Shown: in pieces, positions 43,538 through 60,043 of the stretch
Layout of the letters: each line of letters starts with the position of its first letter
How positions within the stretch are numbered: the stretch's first letter is position 1
Assembly: GCA_002104945.1 (NCBI GenBank)
Contig: MCFH01000015.1
Span: forward strand, 496,001-560,000
Length of the DNA: 64,000 nt
DNA from: Piromyces finnis finn
Taxonomy: Eukaryota > Fungi > Neocallimastigomycota
Direction of reading: 5' to 3'
Program-made: the position numbers and the translations under genes
Notes under the pieces: generated by a model
Database searches by the model: none
What the model was told of the DNA's origin: nothing
Seen by the model: only the letters and a program-made list of their open reading frames with translations

Positions 43538-44552
43538 GCGAATTGGGGAGATTTAAACAAAATTAAAAAAAAAAAAAAAAAAATTAAAGCAATAATTTAT
43601 TTATTTTTTTACCACAAAATTTTCTATCATAATTAATAATTTTTTCCCGCTTAATAAGTATTTAATATAATTTTAATTTTTATTTTCTTTTTTTATTATA
43701 TTTAATAAAATAGGAAAATATTAATTTCTTTACTAAAAATTAAAAAAGTATAAAAATACAGAAAGGGAAAAAATAATATAAAAATACATCTAAAAATTTT
43801 TTTTTCATTATCTTTTCTTTTTTTTACTTTTAGTATTATCTAACTATCTTTTTAACTTTAAAGAAAACACTTTTAGATAAAAAAAAAAAAAAACTAAAAG
43901 AAAAAAATTTTAAAGAAAGGAAGTGGAAATTTTTTTTTATACTACCAAAAATCTTTAAAAAAATTTATAGCATAAAACTAATAGTCAAAAATTTTTAATC
44001 CTATATACTTTTTACAAAAAAAAAACTTTTTACTATTATTATTTATTTTTAAAAGAATTTAAAGAAAAAAACTATGCAGTTTATATAAATTTTTAGATTC
44101 ATTATAAAGAATTTTTATTATTTTTTATATAGAAAACTTTTAAAAAAAAAAAAGTTTATTATAACACTTTGTAAAAAAAAAGTTTTTATATTTAAAAATT
44201 TTTAACTTTTAAAAAAGTTTTATCTATACTTTTTTTATTTTTTTTTTTTTTTTTAACAAATTTATTTTATAAAAATCTATCAATTAAATGAAATAAAAAA
44301 AAAAAATTCAAAAAATAATAAAAAAATAAATTACAAAAAAATCATTGTTTTATATAATATTATAATAAAAGTAAAGTGTTTAGTGTAAGGTGCCATTTTT
44401 TTTTTATAAATATATATGTATTAAAAGTTTTAAAATAGTTTGCTACCATTGAAAAAAAAAAAAATTTAAAGGTAAAAGGATTATACGGTCAAGTCATATC
44501 TGTATTGTTCTGGTTATTAGATTGTCCAACATTTAGAGATATCCGTATTAAA

Positions 44553-44929
44553 CCCTCTTGGGAACGTGCCTTCATTTATTTAATAAATGTAGTTTCTCAA
44601 GGGGGTCTACTCATGCTCATGGTACTGAGAGAGTAGAAAGAATTAAATCCAAGTATTGCGCAATGGATGCTTGGTGCCCTTCCCTCTTGGGAACGTGCCT
44701 TCATTTATTTAATAAATGTAGTTTCTCAAGGGGGTCTACTCATGCTCATGGTACTGAGAGAGTAGAAAGAATTAAATCCAAGTATTGCGCAATGGATGCT
44801 TGGTGCCCTCTTGGAAACGTGCCTTCATTTATTTAATAAATGTAGTTTCTCTAGGGGGTCTACTCATGCTCATGGTACTGAGAGAGTAGGAAGAATTAAA
44901 TCCAAGTATTGCGCAATGGATGCTTGGTT
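44553..44929 (+). repeat. Three tandem 124-bp monomers at LINE 5' end (44553-44676, 44682-44805, 44806-44929)
   Basis: Unit ccctcttgggaacgtgcc...tctactcatgctcatggtactgagagagtaga...ccaagtattgcgcaatggatgcttggtg, with an extra ccctt between units 1 and 2. Confidence 0.97.
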
Positions 44930-45040
44930 AGTCTTTAAGGGAAAATTATTAGGACTAAGCTCATGGTACTGAGCGATTAAAAAACATTTTATTCATCGAA
45001 TTTAAGTATTTGATGAATAAGTTGAATGTTTGATATTCAG

Positions 45041-45381
45041 GTAAGTTTGTATAGTATTTAATTAGAAGAGTAATGCATTTTGTTGCTGTATTTTTTCTTT
45101 TATTCATGTATTCTTGTAGTACTACTCTTCTCTTGTAAGAATCCAATGTAGTCAACTCTAGCATTTGCATTGTATTTTTATATTCATGTAGCTATTGTTG
45201 TATTGTTTCTTGTAAGAGACTGATTCACTCTACATCATGTAAAAATACTATTCACAAGCTTTCTGGTGTCAACATTCTTGATTCAAATTTTTTACCAATT
45301 TAAATATTTAATGAAAAGTAAAGTCAAACAATTTTAGTGTCAAAAAGCGAATCGAATTTACTAACAACAAACCAAAACTAG
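45041..45381 (+). other. Predicted spliceosomal intron in LINE copy 1 5' UTR (341 nt)
   Basis: CAG|GTAAGT donor, TACTAAC branch point at 45359-45365, CTAG| acceptor 16 nt later; conserved in copy 2. Confidence 0.65.
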
Positions 45382-45570
45382 AATTTTAAAAAAAGTTAAC
45401 AACTAGAATTCAAAAAAAGAAACTTTAAACAAAGCATCGTAACAATTTTTGTACTATCCAGTACTTTTAAGAAGAGAGAGAGAGACAGATTTTTTTTCCA
45501 TATACGTTATATTTATAATTTTTATTAGTATTTATTTTATATTCAATATTTTTAATTAGAATTTATTATC

Positions 45571-48500
45571 ATGTCAGTCTTTTATATTAAAGACAAGAAT
45601 TATATCAGACGTGGTACCCGGTCTTATGGTATCCCCTTAGATGATATTCGCTCCTTCTTTATCCGTGGTATTCGATCATGGTCAGTAAATATGCTATGGG
45701 AAAAACTCGAGGTTATTCTAGAAGATAAATTTAATTCAGTTATTAGTGTTAAATATTTTCAAACTTTCAATGATCACTTTTTCTTAGTCAAGGTTCATGG
45801 TTCATCAAAAGATTGTATTAAAATCTTACACATGTTAAAGAAGAAACTTTCAGTTACCTCAATTTCCTTTTCAGCTCGTAGTAGAAGGAATCACAAATAC
45901 ACTTTTTCCACTCTCAAACGTAAAATTTTAGTTTCTAATAAACATCAACATTCTATTCAACAATCATTTCAACAATCAGTTCAACAATCTCATCAACAAT
46001 CCGATCTTCAACAAGATCTTCAACAAGATCTTCAACAAGTTTCCAATCATGAAAATATTCCAGATCTACAGCAAACACAATTTCAATCTCAACATTCAAC
46101 AATTAATTCTAATAGCTCTATCAACTCTGATAACAGTTCAATAGTTGATAGTTCTTCAGTTTCACAGCCATCTAGTAATAGTTCTACTTATTCCTCTGAT
46201 GCATCATCCATTAATAACGATGACTTTAATAATAATAATAATAGCAACGATTCTTCCTCATCCAACAAGCCTGATAACTTTTCTTTTTGTCTTAGTTGGA
46301 ACACCAATGGGTGGAATCACGAAAAGAGAGATAGTATTAGCTATTTCACAGCTATTTTCAAACCATTATTCTTATGTTTCCAAGAAACTGGTAATGGTTC
46401 TGGATCGAATACAGATTATCCTTGTCGTGTTACTTTGCGAAACTATAGACACTTTTTCAAGAAAGCTGACGAATCAGTTCCGGGAATGAGAGGTTTATAT
46501 TTAGGTTTTCACAATTCATGTCAAGCCTCACTTGAAAACTTCTCTGGAAAGTATATTATTTCTATTTATACTTTTAGTCTCTGGAATAGATTCAAATGCT
46601 CGATTGGTAATGTTTATATGCCTCATAGTCATCACAACATCTATGTTGATCATGCAAAGTTAGAAGTTCGCTTGTGGTTACAAACTCATTCATCCCATCC
46701 ATCGATTCTTGTTGGTGATTTTAATATGTCTAAAGTAAAATTATCCAACTGGTTATCAACTAATGGATTAGGAGATTGGGAAATTCTTCCGCTTAGAGGG
46801 TCTACTATCTCTTGGACTCGAGGTGATCAATCTTCCGACATTGACCATGCTCTTATCAATTCGAAGATGAAAGATCTTATTCACTCAGGATCATTTATAA
46901 ATAATTTTTATCCTGTATCAGACCATAAGCCACTTCTTATTAATGGTAAAATTATTCCTATGGAAGATTTTTCTAATGACTTTAATGTTCCTAAGAAAAT
47001 TCTGAAATGGAATAGATTAAAATGTATTGAGGAAAAGGAATCTATTCTCAGTCATAATAAATTCCAAATTCTTTCAGCAAAATTCAACGATCCTAATGTT
47101 TCTACAGATGAACTTTCCAAAGAGTTTACTTCAACTGCTTTTTCAATTGCAGACGAGCTCAGTATTACTTCAGCAAATAATGTTATAAAGTCTTCATTTC
47201 ATATTTCACAACAAATTTTTAATCTTCAAAAAATCAAAATGAAGTTGTATAAGAGATTTAAAAAAGAAAGAATTTATGATATAGATGAATTTATTAAAAG
47301 AATTAAAATCTACCGTAAACTCATTGATTACATCCACAAAAGATGTAATGAATTTAGGAAGCAAGAATATCTTCATTGGATTAAAACAGGATGTGAGTAT
47401 ATGAAGAGTCATAATCCTAAGAAGGCCTGGAAATGGATCAAGAAAACTGCAAAAATTGGAAAAGATTCTTTCTTTATTGCTCAACCAATTAAAAACAAAA
47501 ATGGAGAATTAGTTGTTGCTACGGAAGAACAACTAGATGTGTGGCATGATCATTTCGAAAACCTTGCATCAGATCCAAGTGGTGTAAGTCTTGATTTGGA
47601 GCATTGGTATGAAGAACCAACGAATAAACGTTTTTCACTCCCTATGCTTGATGAATGGGATATCAACCAAGATATTAGTATTGATGAAGTCAAGTCAGCT
47701 ATCCTCTCTACTCCGAATTATAAAGCATCAGGTCCGGATGGTATTCCAATTGAATTTTACAAAGCATTAATTCCATCAAGTAATGATTCTAATAATGCTA
47801 CAGATAATAATTCTTCCGGTAATACCACTTCAGATAATGATGCGTATGGTTTAAATTTTATTCTTAAATTATTCAACCGTATTTGGGATGGAGACTTCCC
47901 CAACTCATGGAATGAATCCAGTATTGTTTCTATTCCTAAGAAGGGAGATTTGACAGATTGTGATAACTATCGAGGTATATCACTTATCAATAATGGTATT
48001 AAGTTGATTTCCAAAATTGTCACCACTAGAATCTCAGAATATGGTCTAAAGAATAATTTCATTAGACCTGAACAATTTGGTTTTCGAAAAAAGGAAGAAA
48101 GTATCAGTCTTTTCATTTCAATCCAAGAAATATGCCGTAGACGTCAATTAGATAATAAAGAGACATATTTGGCCTTTTTAGATCTCAGGAAAGCATACGA
48201 TTCAGTCCCAATCGGTAATATTCTCCATAAATTAGATTGTTTAGGAATCCGAGGTAAGAGTTTACAATTCATCAAAAATTTATATTTAACATCTAAGGCT
48301 AATGTCAAATTAGATGGACAATTCTCGAAATCTTTTGATGTGAAGAAAGGAGTCCGTCAAGGTTGCCCTCTTTCTCCTATTCTCTTTAATCTCTTTATTA
48401 ATGATATATTTAGAGAGTGCGAAGATCTAGGAGTCAGTTTAGGTGACACTCGATGCTGTGGTGGACTTTTTGCAGATGATATAGTTATTTGTGCTCCAAC

Positions 48501-50094
48501 AAGAGGATGCTTAAAAAAGATGCTTAGAAGAGTTAATGAATGGGCATTGTATAATGAAATGGAATTTGGTATCCAGAAATGTTCAACGATGGTGATTCGT
48601 CCTGAATCAATAGAAAATCAGAACAAGAGAGATCCAACATTTTACTTAGCAGGACAACCCATTCCAACTACTGATTGTTATACTTATCTTGGTGTTCCAT
48701 TTGATAAGAATCTGTCCCTTAAACCAGTAATTAAAGCTCTTAATAACAAGGTTTTGAAAGGGCTTTTCTCAGTCAGTAAATTCTTAAGAAATCCTAATAT
48801 TCCTATTCCTTTCAAAAAACTAGTACTTAACTCACAAGTGATTAGCAGAGTTTCATACTTTGCACCATTACTTGGATCCAACAAAGCTAGGTCTAGGATT
48901 GCTCAGAAGCATGTTAACAAAGGAATACGATGGGTTGCCGGAGTTCATAAAGCTGTATCGTTTATATCTTTATACTCTATTTCAAAAGATTTGAATATTC
49001 CTCCATTGTCAGCCAAATGTGCGTTAGCTCAGGTTAGATGTTTTAACAAATGGAAAAACTCAAATTGTATTATCTCACACCTTGTCAATTACATTCCTAA
49101 ATTTAGAAAATACACGTGGTGCAAATCAAGTAGGACACTTGATAAAAAATTAAAGAAACATGGAGATGTTAAAGCAGTTAAAAACTTTTATTGGAAAGAT
49201 CTCAAAGGGAATTCAATCAAAGCGCAATATTATGATGATAATAAATTTATTGAAACTAAAGATTTTATTAAATTATGTTATGAGTACCCAGAGTTTGCCT
49301 ATGGCTTCTACTGGCTATTGAAAGCAAGAAGCGGATACAAGTTGGATGCTAGAGTTGCCAAAGCTGCTAAATTTGTTGATCCAGTTTGTCCTAACTACTG
49401 TCCATGTTGCAAGTGTGGAGATCAAAGTATTAAACATTGGTTATTAGATTGTCCAACATTTAGAGATATCCGTATTAAACATTATGATTCCATAGTCCAG
49501 CTATTAAATTTTTTCAGTCAACGTAATTCCAATAGTCCTATCAATAATAATGAAATTGATAATATCAGTAGAGATAGTAATAACATTAATACTAATAGTA
49601 ACAATAGTAGTAATAACAATAGTAATAGTAACAATAGTAATAGTAACAATAGTAATAATAACAATAATAGAAATAATAATATTAGTAATGATAGCAATAG
49701 TGAAGATAATAATTCTAATTTAGATAGTAATTTAGTTAATGATAGTAATAGTTCTAATAATCCGGTGAATATTAATGTGTATGATTATTCTAGTGTGTGC
49801 AGTAAAATATTTAAATTCCTTCTTGGGGGAAGAAGTTTTAACAATATTAATTACAATTCAAGGGAATGGAAAGAACTTTGTAAGCGTCAGATTCAATCTG
49901 GTACTAACGAAGGAACACCATTCTTGACGGTAACCGCGGAACTTCTAACCAAAATCATGCCTTTTGCTATTGGCCAGCAATGGTCAATGTTCAAAAGGTT
50001 TGAAGCAACATCCAAGAGCGTCAATGCTGAAGAAACAGTAAGACAGGCCAGGAGGGCCAGCGCAACCAATGGAGATCATAATTTTGTTCCATGA
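45571..50094 (+). CDS. LINE polyprotein: N-terminal RRM-like domain, APE endonuclease, reverse transcriptase, C-terminal CCHC-type Zn knuckle, Asn/Ser tract (1507 aa)
   Basis: APE: WNTNG, FQETG, GDFN, IDHAL, SDHKP. RT: GPDGIP, NYRGISL, QFGFR, FLDLRKAYDSV, GVRQGCPLSPILFNLFI, LFADD, YLG. Zn: CPCCKCGDQSIKHWLLDCP. Confidence 0.97.
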   Translation: MSVFYIKDKNYIRRGTRSYGIPLDDIRSFFIRGIRSWSVNMLWEKLEVILEDKFNSVISVKYFQTFNDHFFLVKVHGSSKDCIKILHMLKKKLSVTSISFSARSRRNHKYTFSTLKRKILVSNKHQHSIQQSFQQSVQQSHQQSDLQQDLQQDLQQVSNHENIPDLQQTQFQSQHSTINSNSSINSDNSSIVDSSSVSQPSSNSSTYSSDASSINNDDFNNNNNSNDSSSSNKPDNFSFCLSWNTNGWNHEKRDSISYFTAIFKPLFLCFQETGNGSGSNTDYPCRVTLRNYRHFFKKADESVPGMRGLYLGFHNSCQASLENFSGKYIISIYTFSLWNRFKCSIGNVYMPHSHHNIYVDHAKLEVRLWLQTHSSHPSILVGDFNMSKVKLSNWLSTNGLGDWEILPLRGSTISWTRGDQSSDIDHALINSKMKDLIHSGSFINNFYPVSDHKPLLINGKIIPMEDFSNDFNVPKKILKWNRLKCIEEKESILSHNKFQILSAKFNDPNVSTDELSKEFTSTAFSIADELSITSANNVIKSSFHISQQIFNLQKIKMKLYKRFKKERIYDIDEFIKRIKIYRKLIDYIHKRCNEFRKQEYLHWIKTGCEYMKSHNPKKAWKWIKKTAKIGKDSFFIAQPIKNKNGELVVATEEQLDVWHDHFENLASDPSGVSLDLEHWYEEPTNKRFSLPMLDEWDINQDISIDEVKSAILSTPNYKASGPDGIPIEFYKALIPSSNDSNNATDNNSSGNTTSDNDAYGLNFILKLFNRIWDGDFPNSWNESSIVSIPKKGDLTDCDNYRGISLINNGIKLISKIVTTRISEYGLKNNFIRPEQFGFRKKEESISLFISIQEICRRRQLDNKETYLAFLDLRKAYDSVPIGNILHKLDCLGIRGKSLQFIKNLYLTSKANVKLDGQFSKSFDVKKGVRQGCPLSPILFNLFINDIFRECEDLGVSLGDTRCCGGLFADDIVICAPTRGCLKKMLRRVNEWALYNEMEFGIQKCSTMVIRPESIENQNKRDPTFYLAGQPIPTTDCYTYLGVPFDKNLSLKPVIKALNNKVLKGLFSVSKFLRNPNIPIPFKKLVLNSQVISRVSYFAPLLGSNKARSRIAQKHVNKGIRWVAGVHKAVSFISLYSISKDLNIPPLSAKCALAQVRCFNKWKNSNCIISHLVNYIPKFRKYTWCKSSRTLDKKLKKHGDVKAVKNFYWKDLKGNSIKAQYYDDNKFIETKDFIKLCYEYPEFAYGFYWLLKARSGYKLDARVAKAAKFVDPVCPNYCPCCKCGDQSIKHWLLDCPTFRDIRIKHYDSIVQLLNFFSQRNSNSPINNNEIDNISRDSNNINTNSNNSSNNNSNSNNSNSNNSNNNNNRNNNISNDSNSEDNNSNLDSNLVNDSNSSNNPVNINVYDYSSVCSKIFKFLLGGRSFNNINYNSREWKELCKRQIQSGTNEGTPFLTVTAELLTKIMPFAIGQQWSMFKRFEATSKSVNAEETVRQARRASATNGDHNFVP

Positions 50095-51208
50095 CAAAAT
50101 TTTGATCTTTGGCTCGGTGTCCCATTGGAAGTCAAATACAATTATTATACTTTAGTATGATAGTGGCTTTCTTACTTTAATTAAAATTACTAGAATACAT
50201 TATACCCAAATTTTATTCATTTGTGTTTATTTAAACATATTTTTTTTATTTTTATTTTTATTTTTATTTTTTATTACATGTATTATAATTTTAATTAAAT
50301 TAATAATAAAGTTTAAAATATTTGATGCCGTTAAAAAAAAAAAAAAAAAAAAATATCCGTATTAAACATTATGATTCCATAGTCCAGCTATTAAATTTTT
50401 TCAGTAAACGTAATTCCAATAGTCCTATCAATAATAATGAAATTGATAATATCAGTAGAGATAGTAATAATATTAATAGTAATAGTAACAATAGTAATAA
50501 TAACAATAGTAATAGTAACAATAGTAATAATAACAATAGTAGTAATAGAAATAATAATATTAGTAATGATAGCAATAGTGAAGATAATAATTCTAATTTA
50601 GATAGTAATTTAGTTAATGATAGTAATAGTTCTAATAATCCGGTGAATATTAATGTGTATGATTATTCTAGTGTGTGCAGTAAAATATTTAAATTCCTTC
50701 TTGGGGGAAGAAGTTTTAACAATATCAATTACAATTCAAGGGAATGGAAAGAACTTTGTAAGCGTCAGATTCAATCTGGTACTAATGAAGGAACACCATT
50801 CTTGACGGTAACCGCGGAACTTCTAACCAAAATCATGCCTTTTGCTATTGGCCAGCAATGGTCAATGTTCAAAAGGTTTGAAGCAACATCCAAGAGCGTC
50901 AATGCTGAAGAAACAGTAAGACAGGCCAGGAGGGCCAGCGCAACCAATGGAGATCATAATTTTGTCCCATGATAAAATTTTGATCTTTGGCTCGGTGTCC
51001 CATTGGAAGTCAAATACAATTATTATACTTTAGTATGATAGTGGCTTTCTTACTTTAATTAAAATTACTAGAATACATTATACCCAATTTTTATTCATTT
51101 GTGTTTATTTAAACATATTTTTTTTTATTTTTATTTTATTTTAATTTTTATATTACATGTATTATAATTTTAATTAAATTAATAATAAAGTTTAAAATAT
51201 TTGATGCC

Positions 51209-51261
<53 letters not shown>

Positions 51262-51348
51262 TATTGTTCTTGTAAGAGACTGATTCACTCTACATCATGT
51301 AAAAATACTATTCACAAGCTTTCTGGTGTCGACATTCTTGATTCAATA

Positions 51349-51750
51349 CCCTCTTGGGAACGTGCCTTCATTTATTTAAACCCTCTTGGGAACGTGCCTT
51401 CATTTATTTAATTAATGTAGTTTCTCAAGGGGGTCTACTCATGCTCATGGTACTGAGAGAGTAGAAAGAATTAAATCCAAGTATTGCGCAATGGATGCTT
51501 GGTGCCCTCTTAGGAACGTGCCTTCATTTATTTATTAATGGAGTTTATCAAGGGGGTCTACTCATGCTCATGGTACTGAGAGAGTAGAAAGAATTAAATC
51601 CAAGTATTGTGCAATGGATGCTTGGTGCCCTCTTAGGAACGTGCCTTCATTTATTTAATAATGGAGTTTATCAAGGGGGTCTACTCATGCTCATGGTACT
51701 GAGAGAGTAGAAAGAATTAAATCCAAGCATTGCGCAATGGATGCTTGGTT
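51349..51750 (+). repeat. Copy 2 monomer array: 31-bp partial unit (51349-51379) plus three 123-124-bp units (51381-51504, 51505-51627, 51628-51750)
   Basis: Same unit as copy 1; units 2 and 3 share private variants (ttagg, atggagtttatc). Confidence 0.96.
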
Positions 51751-51861
51751 AGTCTTTAAGGGAAAATTATTAGGACTAAGCTCATGGTACTGAGCGATTA
51801 AAAAACATTTTATTCATCGAATTTAAGTATTTGATGAATAAGTTGAATGTTTGATACTCAG

Positions 51862-52203
51862 GTAAGTTTGTATAGTATTTAATTAGAAGAGTAATACATT
51901 TTGTTGCTGTATTTTTTTCTTTTATTCATGTATTCATGTAGTACTACTCTTCTCTTGTAAGAATCCAATGTAGTCAACTTTAGCATTTGCATTGTATTTT
52001 TATATTCATGTAGCTATTGTTGTATTGTTTCTTGTAAGAGACTGATTCACTCTACATCATGTAAAAATACTATTCACAAGCTTTCTGGTGTCGACATTCT
52101 TGATTCAAATTTTTTACCAATTTAAATATTTAATGAAAAGTAAAGTCAAACAATTTTAGTGTCAAAAAGCGAATCGAATTTACTAACAACAAACCAAAAC
52201 TAG
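51862..52203 (+). other. Predicted spliceosomal intron in LINE copy 2 5' UTR (342 nt)
   Basis: CAG|GTAAGT donor, TACTAAC at 52181-52187, CTAG| at 52200-52203. Confidence 0.65.
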
Positions 52204-52397
52204 AATTTTTAAAGAAAATTTACAACTAGAATTCAAAAAAAAAAAGAAACTTTAAACAAAGCATCGTAACAATTTTTGTTCTATCCAGTACTTTTAAGAA
52301 GAGAGAGAGAGACAGATTTTTTTCCATATACGTTATATTTGTAATTTTCATTAGTATTTATTTTATATTCAATATTTTTTAATTAGAATTTATTATC

Positions 52398-55300
52398 ATG
52401 TCAGTCCTTTATATTAAAGATAAGAATTATATCAGACGTGGTACCCGGTCTTATGGTATCCCCTTAGATGATATTCGCTCCTTCTTTATCCGTGGTATTC
52501 GATCATGGTCAGTAAATATGCTATGGGAAAAACTCGAGGTTATTCTAGAAGATAAATTTAATTCAGTTATTAGTGTTAAATATTTTCAAACTTTCAATGA
52601 TCACTTTTTCTTAGTCAAGGTTCATGGTTCATCAAAAGATTGTATTAAAATCTTACACATGTTAAAGAAGAAACTTTCAGTTACCTCAATTTCCTTTTCA
52701 GCTCGTAGTAGAAGGAATCACAAATACACTTTTTCCACTCTCAAACGTAAAATTTTAGTTTCTAATAAACATCAACATTCTATTCAACAATCATTTCAAC
52801 AATCAGTTCAACAATCTCATCAACAATCCGATCTTCAACAAGATCTTCAACAAGATCTTCAACAAGTTTCCCATCATGAAAATATTCCAGATCTACAGCA
52901 AACACAATTTCAATCTCAACATTCAACAATTAATTCTAATAGCTCTATCAACTCTGATAACAGTTCAATAGTTGATAGTTCTTCAGTTTCACAGCCATCT
53001 AGTAATAGTTCTACTTATTCCTCTGATGCATCATCCATTAATAATGATGACCTTGATAATAATAATAATAGCAACGATTCTTCCTCATCCAACAAGCCTG
53101 ATAACTTTTCTTTTTGTCTTAGTTGGAACACCAATGGGTGGAATCACGAAAAGAGAGATAGTATTAGCTATTTCACAGCTATTTTCAAACCATTATTTTT
53201 ATGTTTCCAAGAAACTGGTAATGGTTCTGGATCGAATACAGATTATCCTTGTCGTGTTACTTTGCGAAACTATAGACACTTTTTCAAGAAAGCTGACGAA
53301 TCAGTTCCTGGAATGAGAGGTTTATATTTAGGTTTTCACAATTCGTGTCAAGCCTCACTTGAAAACTTCTCTGGAAAGTATATTATTTCTATTTATACTT
53401 TTAGTCTCTGGAATAGATTCAAATGCTCGATTGGAAATGTTTATATGCCTCATAGTCATCACAACATCTATGTTGATCATGCAAAGTTAGAAGTTCGCTT
53501 GTGGTTACAAACTCATTCATCCCATCCATCGATTCTTGTTGGTGATTTTAATATGTTTAAAGTAAAATTATCCAACTGGTTATCAACTAATGGATTAGGA
53601 GATTGGGAAATTCTTCCGCTTAGAGGGTCGACTATCTCTTGGACTCGAGGTGATCAATCTTCCGACATTGACCATGCTCTTATCAATTCGAAGATGAAAG
53701 ATCTTATTCACTCAGGATCATTTATAAATAATTTTTATCCTGTATAAGACCATAAGCCACTTCTTATTAATGGTAAAATTATTCCTATGGAAGATTTTTC
53801 TAATGACTTTAATGTTCCTAAGAAAATTCTGAAATGGAATAGATTAAAATGTATTGAGGAAAAGGAATCTATTCTCAGTCATAATAAATTCCAAATACTT
53901 TCAGCAAAATTCAACGATCCTAATGTTTCTACAGATGAACTTTCCAAAGAGTTTACTTCAACTGCTTTTTCAATTGCAGACGAGCTCAGTATTACTTCAG
54001 CAAATAATGTTATAAAGTCTTCATTTCATATTTCACAACAAATTTTTAATCTTCAAAAAATCAAAATGAAGTTGTATAAGAGATTTAAAAAAGAAAGAAT
54101 TTATGATATAGATGAATTTATTAAAAGAATTAAAATCTACCGTAAGCTCATTGATTACATCCACAAAAGATGTAATGAATTTAGGAAGCAAGAATATCTT
54201 AATTGGATTAAAACAGGATGTGAGTATATGAAGAGTCATAATCCTAAGAAGGCCTGGAAATGGATCAAGAAAACTGCAAAAATTGGAAAAGATTCTTTCT
54301 TTATTGCTCAACCAATTAAAAATAAAAATGGAGAATTAGTTGTTGCTACGGAAGAACAACTAGAAGTGTGGCATGATCATTTCGAAAATCTTGCATCAGA
54401 TCCAAGTGGTGTAAGTCTTGATTTGGAGCATTGGTATGAAGAACCAATGAATAAACGTTTTTCACTTCCTATGCTTGATGAGTGGGATATCAACCAAGAT
54501 ATTAGTATTGATGAAGTCAAGTCAGCTATCCTCTCTACTCCAAATTATAAAGCATCTGGTCCGGATGGTATTCCAATTGAATTTTACAAAGCATTAGTTC
54601 CATCAAGTAATGATTCTAATAATGCTACAGATAATAATTCTTCTGGTAATACTACTTCAGATAATGATGCTCATGGTTTAAATTTTATTCTTAAATTATT
54701 CAACCGTATTTGGGATGGAGATTTCCCCAACTCATGGAATGAATCCAGTATTGTTTCTATTCCTAAGAAGGGAGATTTGACAGATTGTGATAACTATCGA
54801 GGTATATCACTTATCAATAATGGTATTAAGTTGATTTCCAAAATTGTCACCACTAGAATCTCAGAATATGGTCTAAAGAATAATTTCATTAGACCTGAAC
54901 AATTTGGTTTTCGAAAAAAGGAAGAAAGTATTAGTCTTTTCATTTCAATCCAAGAAATATGCCGTAGACGTCAATTAGATAATAAAGAGACATATTTGGC
55001 CTTTTTAGATCTCAGGAAAGCATACGATTCAGTCCCAATCGGTAATATTCTCCATAAATTAGATTGTTTAGGAATCCGAGGTAAGAGTTTACAATTCATC
55101 AAAAATTTATATTTAACATCTAAGGCTAATGTCAAATTAGATGGACAATTCTCGAAATCTTTTGATGTGAAGAAAGGAGTCCGTCAAGGTTGCCCTCTTT
55201 CTCCTATTCTCTTTAATCTCTTTATTAATGATATATTTAAAGAGTGCGAAGATCTTGGAGTCAGTTTAGGTGACACTCGATGCTGTGGTGGACTTTTTGC

Positions 55301-56948
55301 AGATGATATAGTTATTTGTGCTCCAACAAGAGGATGCTTAAAAAAGATGCTTAGAAGAGTTAATGAATGGGCATTGTATAATGAAATGGAATTTGGTATC
55401 CAGAAATGTTCAACGATGGTGATTCGTCCTGAATCAATAGAAAATCAGAACAAGAGAGATCCAACATTTTACTTAGCAGGACAACCCATTCCAACTACTG
55501 ATTGTTATACTTATCTTGGTGTTCCATTTGATAAGAATTTGTCCCTTAAACCAGTAATTAAAGCTCTTAATAACAAGGTTTTGAAAGGACTTTTCTCAGT
55601 CAGTAAATTCTTAAGAAATCCTAATATTCCTATTCCTTTCAAAAAGCTAGTACTTAACTCACAAGTGATTAGCAGAGTTTCATACTTTGCACCATTACTT
55701 GGATCCAACAAAACTAGGTCTAGGATTGCTCAGAAGCATGTTAACAAAGGAATACGATGGGTTGCCGGAGTTCATAAAGCTGTATCGTTTATTTCTTTAT
55801 ACTCTATTTCAAAAGATTTGAATATTCCTCCATTGTCAGCCAAATGTGCGTTAGCTCAGGTTAGATGTTTTAACAAATGGAAAAACTCAAATTGTATTAT
55901 CTCACACCTTGTCAATTACATTCCTAAATTTAGAAAATACACGTGGTGCAAATCAAGTAGGACACTTGATAAAAAACTAAAGAAACATGGAGATGTTAAA
56001 GCAGTTAAAAACTTTTATTGGAAAGATCTCAAAGGGAATTCAATCAAAGCGCAATATTATGATGATAATAAATTTATTGAAACTAAAGATTTTATTAAAT
56101 TATGTTATGAATACCCAGAGTTTGCCTATGGCTTCTACTGGCTATTGAAAGCAAGAAGCGGATACAAGTTGGATGCTAGAGTTGCCAAAGCTGCTAAATT
56201 TGTTGATCCAGTTTGTCCTAACTACTGTCCATGTTGCAAGTGTGGAGATCAAAGTATTAAACATTGGTTATTAGATTGTCCAACATTTAGAGATATCCGT
56301 ATTAAACATTATGATTCCATAGTCCATCTATTAAATTTTTTCAGTCAACGTAATTCCAATAGTCCTATCAATAATAATGAAATTGATAATATCAGCAGAG
56401 ATAGCAATAACAGTAATAGTAATAGTAACAATTTTAATAATAACAACAGTAATAATAACAATAGTAGTAATAGTAATAATAGAAATAGTAATAATAACAA
56501 TAGTAGTAATAGAAATAATAATATTAGTAATGATATTAGTAATGATAGCAATAGTGAAGATAATAATTCTAATTTAGATAGTAATTTAGTTAATAATAGT
56601 AATAGTTCTAATAATCCGGTGAATATTAATGTGTATGATTATTCTAGTGTGTGCAGTAAAATATTTAAATTCCTTCTTGGGGGAAGAAGTTTTAACAATA
56701 TTAATTACAATTCAAGGGAATGGAAAGAACTTTGTAAGCGTCAGATTCAATCTGGTACTAACGAAGGAACACCATTCTTGACGGTAACCGCGGAACTTCT
56801 AACCAAAATCATGCCTTTTGCTATTGGCCAGCAATGGTCAATGTTCAAAAGGTTTGAAGCAACATCCAAGAGCGTCAATGCTGAAGAAACAGTAAGACAG
56901 GCCAGGAGGGCCAGCGCAACCAATGGAGATCATAATTTTGTTCCATGA
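52398..56948 (+). pseudogene. LINE copy 2 polyprotein interrupted by TCA>TAA at 53745-53747
   Basis: ORFs 52398-53747 and 53787-56948 are in the same frame. Copy 1 reads cct gta tca gac cat; copy 2 reads cct gta taa gac cat (APE SDH motif). Confidence 0.96.
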
Positions 56949-58215
56949 CAAAATTTTGATCTTTGGCTCGGTGTCCCATTGGAAGTCAAATACAATTATT
57001 ATACTTTAGTATGATAGTGGCTTTCTTACTTTAATTAAAATTACTAGAATACATTATACCCAATTTTTATTCATTTGTGTTTATTTAAACATATTTTTTT
57101 TTATTTTTATTTTTATTTTAATTTTTTATATTACATGTATTATATTTTTAATTAAATTAATAATAAAGTTTAAAAATATTTGATGCAGTTAAAAAAAAAA
57201 AAAAAAAAAAAAATTCTAATAAATATGAATCATGTATAGATGATTTTTATCCTGTATCAGATCGTAAGCTTACAATTCCTTTTATTTATTCTTGCGTTTT
57301 GTTGTGGGGTGCGATTACCATTACTTTTAATCATATTTTTTAATTTTTTTATTTTTCTCTATTTTTATTTTTTCGAAGGGCGCTGCTTTTTTTATCTACG
57401 ATTTTTATATAATTTCTAGTAATGTCTTTATTTTTGAAACTCTAGGTTTTCCAAGGAATCTCCTTCTACTAAAATTCTTTTGTATACTTTTTCTATCTCT
57501 TTTCTATATATCTTTTATACTATATATTACATATTTATCTATATATTTGTATAATTTTTTAGATTTATTATGGACTCTCATGGTAAGTATCAAACACCTT
57601 CTTTTTTTCTATTAACATTGTGCCAATGAAGCTTAAATCCTGGAAAATCGAGTATTCTAGTTTTTATTTTATATACTACTCTTGGTTCAAATTGTATTTT
57701 GAAATTTTATTATGTTCTTTATTTAAATTCTTTAAATCCTTTACCCTTTGCAATATGGTATAATAGCTGCTCACTCTTTTACCACTCTTCCTTCATCATA
57801 AATTAGCATTAATGATTATTTAAATCCAACAACCAGAATCAACATAACACAATAGTCAACCAACAAACAGCATTTTCTAATAAAAAAATAAAGTTTACAA
57901 ATTATAGTTATAATTCAGAAATTCAAAGTGACAGAATATAAATTTATTTCCAATTTAAAGTCTTCAATAAAGTTAAAACTAAATTTTTTCAGTAACTAAG
58001 TTATTTTTTTCCAAGTTTTAAAATTAAAACATTGTTTGACAAATAATCCAATAACTATTCTATATATCCGTTTTTTACTAAAATTATTTTTTATACTATT
58101 ATATTACTATTTTATATTAATTTTATCCAATATTTATCAATCAATATCAATATCTATTTTAATATTAAATATCAATTTTTTAATAGTTATATTTCCATAA
58201 TAAGTTCCTTTAAAA

Positions 58216-60012
58216 ATGAACATTATCAATTGTACTGTGTATACCTTACGACGTGGCCTACGTTTCTTTGGGCCTAACTCAAATAAATCATACCTCATTT
58301 TTATCCATGATCTTAGTTCATGGTCCAAACAACGCCTAATGGAATTTTTATTAAAAGATATTCAGCCTTTCAATAAAATTCTCCAAATCCCTTAACAAAA
58401 AATATTCACAATCACTCGGTACTTATTTCATTCTAAAAGCCGACAGTAAATTTCCGCTAAAAGTCATACTTCTTATTCACTCTCTTTCCAATAAACTCCC
58501 AATTTCTAGTAAAATATCTTGGAAATTCATTGATAAGCTCAAAAATAATAGATCTTATAAAAATAAGCGTTCTATTAAAACCACCATTTATCCACTCTCG
58601 GACAATTTCTACTTTAGTCACTTAAATTCTAATACTTCCTTTTTCAACTTATGTACTTACTGGAACATCAATGGTTGGAACCCGAAGAAAAAGGACGGGG
58701 TTCTATACTTCACTTCAGTTTTCAAACCTATATGTGTTTGCCTTCAAGAAGTAGGTAGCAACCAATTCCTTTGTAGTAATGCAATTTCTTCTCCATGCCT
58801 TCCGAACTATAAACCAGTACATAGACGTGCTAATCCTAAAGTTCCTGGTATGAGAGGGCTTTACATTGGTGTTCACAATTTATGTTCCTTTGCACCTGAA
58901 CCTCTTCTATATAAGTACATTATTTCAGTTACATTATTGTCATTTTGGAGCCAGAGATGTACCATTGGTAATATTTATTTCCCGAAAACTAGATGGCCGG
59001 ATGCTAAATTAATTGCCTTTGATGAACTTGGGAAATGGCTAACAACACATAACAAATTCAACCATCCAGCTATCCTTGAAGGAGACTTTAATATGACAGC
59101 TATTAAAATCAAATCTTATATACCACAACACTTCCCGGATTGGACTATGGCAGAATTAACTGGTAATAATTTCACTTGGGAAAAAGGTTCTAAATCTTCA
59201 TGCATTGATCATATTATATACAACAAAGCTATGACAGAACACATAAACAAATCTTCAGTTTGCGAAGTTTTTCACGATGTTTCTGATCACAAACCGATCC
59301 TTGTGTCTTGTAAAAAAGACTCTTCTGATGGTTTCAAAAAGCCTAAGAAGACCTTTAAATGGTCAAGTCATATCTGTAACACAAAGTGTTCTGACATTCT
59401 TACTAGTAATCGCTTTGCTGTTCTAGCTTCCGAGCTTGAAACTAATTGCGATAGCCTTTCGGCTGACGATATGGTTTCAAGTCGTTCCAGTTTTTATCCT
59501 GGTTGTTAAGGCGTTTCCTTAGCATACATAAGGCTTCTGGTTCGACCCAGCAGATGTCAGTGCCTGTTGATTTTCCCACTGGGTTTGCCATGGGTTGGGT
59601 TATGATATTCAGGTAAGTATAAATGAACTTTCTAATTTACTACTATGATAATAACACTCGTCTAGCCGGCCTGAGAGGATCTAGTGTACATGGTACATTC
59701 CAAATTAGAACTTAATAAGTGGTGACTTAGGCTATGCCAAAAACACATAATATTCCTTAATCAATTTAAGTGTAAACATTAGGGGGCGGTTGACACGTGA
59801 TCAAATTGACTATAAGAGGCTTAGCATTGTAGTTGTGAAATATCGTACAACGACATGCATCTAATGTACATGGATTAAGTGAGCGTCGAAGCTGAAGAAA
59901 CAGTATGACAGACCAGGAGGGTCACAACCACCTAGCAATAGGAATGAGCCAACGTTTCTCTAAGAACCACCATTGGAGCTAACTCTGATCGATGGGAGAA
60001 ATGCACTCGGAA

Positions 60013-60043
<31 letters not shown>

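Follow-up and report, generated by a model that had tools for sequence, protein, structure and literature searches.

Our analysis shows that a 341-nt stretch in the leader of a LINE of the anaerobic gut fungus Piromyces finnis (positions 45041 to 45381, plus strand, of the 64,000-nt DNA analyzed here, which we call the window) is transcribed into the template RNA of the element and kept. The stretch has the outward signs of a spliceosomal intron. We assign a probability of roughly 0.55 to the reading that it is a retained leader module which works unspliced and is flanked by splice signals peculiar to the family, with these signals being used seldom if ever. Its interior holds a conserved noncoding core, which recurs in roughly a dozen LINE lineages of anaerobic gut fungi that are related to the P. 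finnis element at 38 to 63% protein identity.

The stretch lies in a nest of non-LTR retrotransposons that occupies 44.5 to 62 kb of the 64-kb window. The nest is composed of LINE copy 1 (44554 to 50353, plus strand), an older 5'-truncated LINE copy that encloses it (44511 to 44553 plus 50353 to 51257), and, downstream of copy 1, LINE copy 2 (about 51348 to 57214), whose ORF is split in two. The single ORF of copy 1 (45571 to 50094, plus strand; 1,507 aa) encodes an apurinic-type (APE) endonuclease and a reverse transcriptase (Pfam Exo_endo_phos and RVT_1); RVT_1 was matched at 1.3e-35, and Exo_endo_phos was detected in the N-terminal ORF of copy 2. Human L1 ORF2p is the best solved relative of this protein (E = 1.6e-33). 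Endonuclease and reverse transcriptase in a single ORF are as found in APE-type (L1-like) non-LTR elements, and the further hallmarks of such LINEs are present as well: a poly(A) tail, a target-site duplication (TSD), variable 5' ends, and a variable number of 5' monomers. In copy 1, the TSD is 15 bp long (ATATCCGTATTAAAC, at 44539 to 44553 and 50353 to 50367) and the poly(A) tail has 20 nt (tail and right-hand TSD, 50334 to 50367, plus strand). Pfam searches of the LINE ORF found no GIY-YIG domain and found the APE domain instead; the fungal element belongs with the L1-like LINEs rather than with the Penelope-like elements. Intergenic DNA in the window has a GC content of 14 to 20%. A Dictyostelium-type, tRNA-targeted element, which had been a guess from the high AT content, was dropped; the window is without tRNA genes or Rfam matches, and the relatives of the LINE come from gut metagenomes.

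Three tandem monomers of about 124 to 129 bp each, delimited by tandem repeat finder, form the 5' end of the LINE (44553 to 44928, plus strand). They are richer in GC (41%), and every monomer contains the perfect palindrome ATTGCGCAAT (e.g., at 44654 to 44663), a bZIP/C-EBP-type site. The monomers are probably promoter units. Genomic copies hold 0 to about 4 of them, and the 5' start of a copy is often monomer position 1. In several sister families (L037, L045, L051, L060, and L067), TGCGCAATG motifs, which are related to the monomer palindrome, occur upstream of the core. A nonrepeated leader segment (44929 to 45040, plus strand) connects the monomers with the donor-like site described below.

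Pieces of the stretch were also seen ahead of monomer arrays. An 87-nt piece, corresponding to 45199 to 45286, lies at 51260 to 51346 (plus strand), directly upstream of the monomers of copy 2, with 97.7 to 98.9% identity, and at another locus (L024, positions 640 to 1253) a whole 5' part, up to position 117 of the stretch, stands directly upstream of a fresh monomer array. These arrangements suggest same-strand insertion into, or template switching onto, the leader of another copy. Three full-length copies (L092 to L094; G000:C1:1522176, 1527689, and 1533310) are ordered head to tail with a spacing of about 5.5 kb, like the nest in the window, and the LINE family seems to land within or beside itself.

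The intron-like stretch starts at 45041, within a donor-like CAG/GTAAGT (45038 to 45046, plus strand) that agrees with the 5' splice-site (U1) consensus over 9 nt. Toward the end of the stretch, a branch-like TACTAAC (45359 to 45365, plus strand) puts the branch A at 17 nt from the last base of an acceptor-like CTAG, which ends at 45381 (plus strand) and has a near duplicate, ACAACTAG, at 45400 to 45407. Consensus 5' splice site, branch site, and 3' AG are thus all present with proper spacing. As the initial annotation had described, they can be read directly in both full-length copies of the window (45041 to 45381 in copy 1; 51862 to 52203 in copy 2). When the 1,018-nt leader was simulated 20,000 times with a first-order Markov model, GTAAGT, TACTAAC, and YAG in the right order and spacing arose with P = 0.005, and with P = 0.0001 when the CAG prefix was included. 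Signals so unlikely to arise by chance count against the retained-module reading, and so do host introns of similar length with a GTAAGT donor. One of the latter, in the UDP-glucose pyrophosphorylase gene (41393 to about 41861), has about 468 nt, a GTAAGT donor, and an AG end, which makes a length of 341 nt normal for P. finnis; it has no CTAAC branch consensus, and its 3' end is A/T rich. The donor is probably recognizable to the spliceosome.

The genomic copies of the element show what has passed through RNA. That copy 1 passed through RNA with the 341 nt intact, as had been deduced from its TSD and poly(A) tail, agrees with our survey, in which about 300 copies keep the stretch. The comparison of spliced with unspliced copies, a test that had been named beforehand, lent no support to a splicing switch. 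Exact donor 23-mers occur 190 times in the genome and exact branch/acceptor 28-mers 297 times, whereas the spliced junction (45040/45382) has no genomic match with up to 3 mismatches allowed. Likewise, the end of exon 1 is joined to exon 2 in none of about 197 copies that have an exact exon-1 end. In these copies, among which aberrant ends were sought as CAG followed by non-G, GV, or GTB, the exact CAG is followed by GTAAGT (190 copies), by GCAAGT (3 copies; a shared variant), by ATAAGT or TTAAGT (3 copies; point mutants of G1), or by a deletion (1 copy). Human L1 has functional splice sites in its 5' UTR and spliced retrocopies (SpIREs), which make up about 2% of its full-length copies (Larson et al. 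2018; PMC5860796). The same proportion would amount to about six among the P. finnis copies, whereas we found no RNA-derived copy without the 341 nt among about 300 and one copy without 79 nt.

This one copy (G000:C216:154552-154576; L042/L089) is a candidate SpIRE, which would be a genomic copy with a precise GT..AG deletion between own splice sites of the element. It lacks exactly 45041 to 45119, a 79-nt segment (GTAAGT...TCTTGTAG) that starts at the donor and has GT and AG as its bounds; the terminal TCTTGTAG sits behind a T-rich run, and the bounds share a 2-nt microhomology (AG). The copy is possibly a retrocopy of an RNA that would have been spliced from the predicted donor to a cryptic acceptor; alternatively, it may have arisen by plain deletion through the 2-nt microhomology. 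A GT..AG deletion that starts exactly at the donor counts against the retained-module reading.

Copies that have the exact acceptor and no exact donor 23-mer retain the stretch, too. All 20 that were sampled have the donor region and the stretch, with an intact GTAAGT in 17. Most of them belong to a third subfamily, in which exon 1 differs by one deleted and one changed base; in the oldest copy (L109), about 93 nt of the core are missing. An internal transcription start within the stretch had been considered and was dropped; all 20 copies reach up through the donor and the monomers, and there is no clustering of 5' ends within the stretch. Across four subfamilies, the oldest of which is about 12 to 18% diverged, the donor is intact in most copies, which also counts against the retained-module reading. 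In a sample of six old copies, GTAAAT was found in two and G1 point mutations in two. GCAAGT is shared by three copies at different loci (G000:C18:38083, C113:269851, and C160:234540; L022 to L024); a progenitor with a GC donor thus still spread. Two copies have a longer distance from donor to acceptor than the usual roughly 333 nt, namely, about 712 nt (G000:C24:990305-991044) and about 413 nt (C79:216340-216780), by insertions in the stretch.

The distribution of ATGs had been taken as a rationale for splicing, on the count of six ATGs in the stretch and none in the 189 nt from acceptor to start codon (45382 to 45570). Our recount agrees with these numbers, while the rationale itself fails. 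Six ATGs are what the composition of the stretch leads one to expect (shuffle mean, 5.9), and four of the six belong to a (C/A)ATGTA motif; their absence from the 189 nt is mildly unusual (P = 0.037). The whole leader, roughly 1 kb, has 24 ATGs, of which 18 precede the donor, with 15 in the monomers and the other 3 in the nonrepeated segment of 112 nt. Because copies commonly start at the first monomer base, the RNA includes the monomer ATGs, and splicing would leave these upstream ATGs uncleared. Moreover, the ATG-free part of the leader (45314 to 45570, plus strand) follows a conserved ATG at 45311, so that the zone before the start codon, counted as 260 nt, starts 71 nt inside the stretch. 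An ATG-free zone of 233 to 333 nt, following a conserved TATGAA block, also exists in five sister families, in which splice signals are absent. By this comparison, the zone is ancestral and is not aligned with the acceptor.

What the stretch has in common with other elements is its interior. Relatives were collected by a protein search of gut-metagenome contigs (38 to 63% identity), eight of which were read, and a pattern made from the shared core found further contigs; 15 are true relatives. An exact search of the metagenome contigs with the exon-1 end gave no match. In alignment A1 of these sequences, the core (45092 to 45245, plus strand) is noncoding and consists of repeated (T/A)TGTA(G/A) on one strand, with the shared blocks TC.TGTAGT, CTCATGTAAGAATC, ATTGTAT, CATGTAGCT, and TTGTAAGAG-NN-TGATTCACTC-.AAATCTTGTA. 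The 341 nt contain 11 TGTA, compared with 2.3 ± 1.5 expected, and no other place in the window reaches 10. The strand bias is found in 13 of 13 sequences (TGTA, 6 to 11; TACA, 0 to 4). RNAalifold places a small hairpin at 45215 to 45231 (plus strand), with an AGAG/CTCT stem and a 9-nt loop that contains an invariant TGATTCA. Its 4-bp stem pairs in all 13 sequences (52 of 52 cells), and the closing pair is AU in 8, GC in 4, and UA in 1 of them. Over their full length, the 341 nt show no exceptional RNA structure (z = -1.39), which counts against the retained-module reading, and support is confined to this one 4-bp hairpin. No open reading frame crosses the core in any frame of the 13 sequences. 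“Start-stop” mini-ORFs (ATGTAG or ATGTAA) had been considered as the conserved feature and were dropped, as the first base varies (A, T, or C) and TGTAG is fixed. With any other base at one variable position, the core pattern has no match in the P. finnis genome.

The core also keeps its place: its end lies 326 to 417 nt from the start codon in six of six families measured (the window family and five sisters). Within P. finnis, an old subfamily and the others are 88 to 92% identical in the stretch and 81 to 83% identical in its flanks, the latter being the range that the nonrepeated segment shows between subfamilies. The core is under sequence constraint across lineages. The splice signals, on the other hand, are kept only within the P. 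finnis family. In the 260 nt that precede the core, all sister lineages are without GTAAGT, GTATGT, and GTGAGT. Conservation of the splice sites across families had been named beforehand as the refuting test, and the outcome is unfavorable to an intron: the donor is absent from all sisters, and the best-conserved part of the leader is the interior of the stretch. Since the core is shared with sisters in which the donor is absent, the leader module appears to be older, and the splice-like signals appear to be a later acquisition of the P. finnis family only. We found no paper in a literature search on LINEs of anaerobic gut fungi, and the conserved TGTA module seems to be undescribed.

Sequencing runs of the same organism add contigs that contain the stretch. 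Four runs from three studies (2016 to 2022) are presumed to be RNA, being taken as transcriptomes from their contig totals (20 to 45 Mb), longest contigs (9 to 17 kb), and years; one metatranscriptome came up as well, with a small share. Contigs of the four presumed-RNA runs cross one or both junctions unbroken, and their depth in the stretch equals that in the flanks (777 throughout in run X2 and 56.5 in run X1), with the proviso that contigs drop rare isoforms. The contigs of these four runs report no splice joint, and a minor isoform could be hidden in them. If the runs are RNA, unspliced LINE RNA dominates; if they are DNA, the contigs merely repeat the genomic result. Two JGI contigs of one sister family are 5'-truncated DNA copies and carry no information on RNA. 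In runs X2 to X4, position 46099, within the ORF, is linked in contigs directly with the beginning of the 3' UTR (about 50099), and the boundaries are not GT..AG; this join looks like an internally deleted, nonautonomous derivative of the LINE.

A regulated 5'-UTR intron would have part of the transcripts spliced and translated, with the unspliced, core-bearing RNA as the copying template, so that intron-less copies would not arise. We regard this as improbable, although the donor, branch, and acceptor are perfect and properly spaced, the length is within the host range, and Penelope demonstrates that this kind of design is possible; the SpIRE-like copy, too, loses only 79 nt upstream of the core and fits the rule that only core-keeping RNAs get copied. 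The absence of intron-less copies among about 300, the contigs of the presumed-RNA runs without a joint or a drop in depth, the 18 upstream ATGs that would survive splicing, an ATG-free zone that is ancestral and not tied to the acceptor, and sister families that manage without a donor all argue against it. Under the same reading, the protein would have to work in trans on another RNA, contrary to the cis preference that LINE proteins usually show. Zero spliced copies, the remaining ATGs, the ancestral zone, and the donor-less sisters likewise tell against the switch that the initial annotation had put forward, with a spliced isoform for translation and an unspliced one as template. An intron that acts as a division-of-labor switch, the spliced RNA being messenger only and the unspliced RNA template only, could carry a cis-required RNA module, and such a module would explain why none of about 300 copies is intron-less; we hold this to be very improbable.

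Two readings dispense with splicing. CAG/GTAAGT may be a candidate U1 snRNP site that would suppress premature cleavage and polyadenylation in an AT-rich transcript, or would influence nuclear retention or RNA fate, with branch and acceptor being incidental. The case for it comes from other retroelements. All three CAGGTAAGT sites of the 64-kb window lie in retroelements, namely, in the two LINE copies and in a SINE-like element, where the 16 nt TGATATTCAGGTAAGT (59606 to 59621, plus strand) are identical to those around the LINE donor-like site. The 15-mer GGTTATGATATTCAG at the SINE site has 214 genomic matches; matches without the G after CAG number only two, both in unrelated DNA, and the G is present in every SINE copy examined. 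The leaders of two other LINE families (57583 to 57591; L037, about 520 to 530) contain (A/C)(T/A)GGTAAGTAT, which matches the 5' end of U1 over a long run. These super-consensus donors in the SINE and the two LINE families hint at selection for U1 binding and count against the retained-module reading; the intact donor in most copies of four subfamilies points the same way. However, we know of no fungal precedent for U1-dependent protection from polyadenylation, the sister families with the same core have no such site, and the three copies with GCAAGT still spread. We consider a U1 site without splicing quite unlikely. Downstream of GGTAAGTAT, the two other LINE families have CTAAT or TTAAC plus TAG, and it may be that introns or U1 sites in the leader recur in gut fungi. 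The SINE-like element itself (59481 to 60041) has a poly(A) tail and a TSD, is inserted in another LINE, and shares with the LINE a further 41-nt motif (59881 to 59921 matches 50016 to 50056, with 90% identity).

The core might instead act as DNA, as an internal promoter, with the splice-like signals being neutral. Internal promoters are known from LINE 5' UTRs, and promoter activity is lost in spliced human L1 copies; the short repeated motifs and the TGATTCA heptamer do resemble transcription-factor sites. This account is unlikely, too, given that the motifs keep a single orientation across 13 lineages, that the hairpin covaries, and that the start codon follows at a fixed distance. The monomer array, which is separate from the core and has a bZIP-type palindrome, is already promoter-like, and a spliced copy that was dead on arrival would still show in the genome, where none was found.

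Under the retained-module reading, an old noncoding module, made of one-strand TGTA repeats and the hairpin with the TGATTCA loop, would have come first, and consensus splice signals would later have come to bracket it in the P. finnis family. The promoter would lie in the upstream monomers. The spliceosome may recognize the donor now and then, with splicing of the whole stretch rare or absent, and the stretch would stay entire in the RNA that serves for translation and for reverse transcription. Because the motifs are biased to one strand, the hairpin covaries, and the ATG-free run and the start codon follow at a fixed distance, we infer that the core has its role in the RNA. As a binding platform, it could either help ribosomes to reach the ORF across the roughly 1-kb, ATG-full leader or mark out the RNA for the protein that the element itself encodes.

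The splice-like signals are a variation on a theme known from human L1 and Penelope. Penelope-like elements had been named as the sole retroelements that retain an intron, and this is too narrow in view of the splice sites and spliced retrocopies of human L1 (PMC5860796). Like human L1, the fungal element is an APE/RT LINE with a donor and an acceptor in its 5' UTR, in which the unspliced full-length RNA propagates and leader splicing is a side road; the 79-nt GT..AG deletion copy would be its one SpIRE candidate. It differs in that its splice signals are of full consensus. In Penelope, a 75-bp intron lies near the transcription start, and spliced and unspliced RNAs were seen by RT-PCR; its splice sites are conserved between elements that are 67% identical, and intron deletion abolishes reporter expression, with a post-transcriptional role (Schostak et al. 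2008; PMC2377424). The fungal LINE resembles Penelope in keeping an intron-like 5' segment through retrotransposition. Its splice sites are putative and its sisters lack the donor, whereas in Penelope the sites are conserved and splicing was detected by RT-PCR, and it has an APE endonuclease in place of the GIY-YIG endonuclease of Penelope-like elements. A Penelope-like element with an intron kept in its 5' region was reportedly also described by Arkhipova and colleagues in 2003. Mouse L1 has tandem 5' monomers in variable number, followed by a nonmonomeric leader before the ORF. The fungal LINE shares this layout; its monomer sequences are unrelated to those of mouse L1, and its leader adds the deeply conserved TGTA-rich module.

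If an intron switch were true, the Penelope-type strategy would be extended to L1-like elements; if the stretch is unspliced, the splice-like signals in its leader put the fungal LINE beside human L1 as an ordinary case. Of more use is the finding of the TGTA-rich, one-strand module with its hairpin at a fixed distance from the start codon, common to about a dozen gut-fungus LINE lineages whose protein identity goes as low as 38%. Mammalian L1 leaders are often replaced, and LINE leaders usually turn over fast. Because of this, the deep conservation of the module points to a cis element, a candidate for a role in translation or in the choice of the template.
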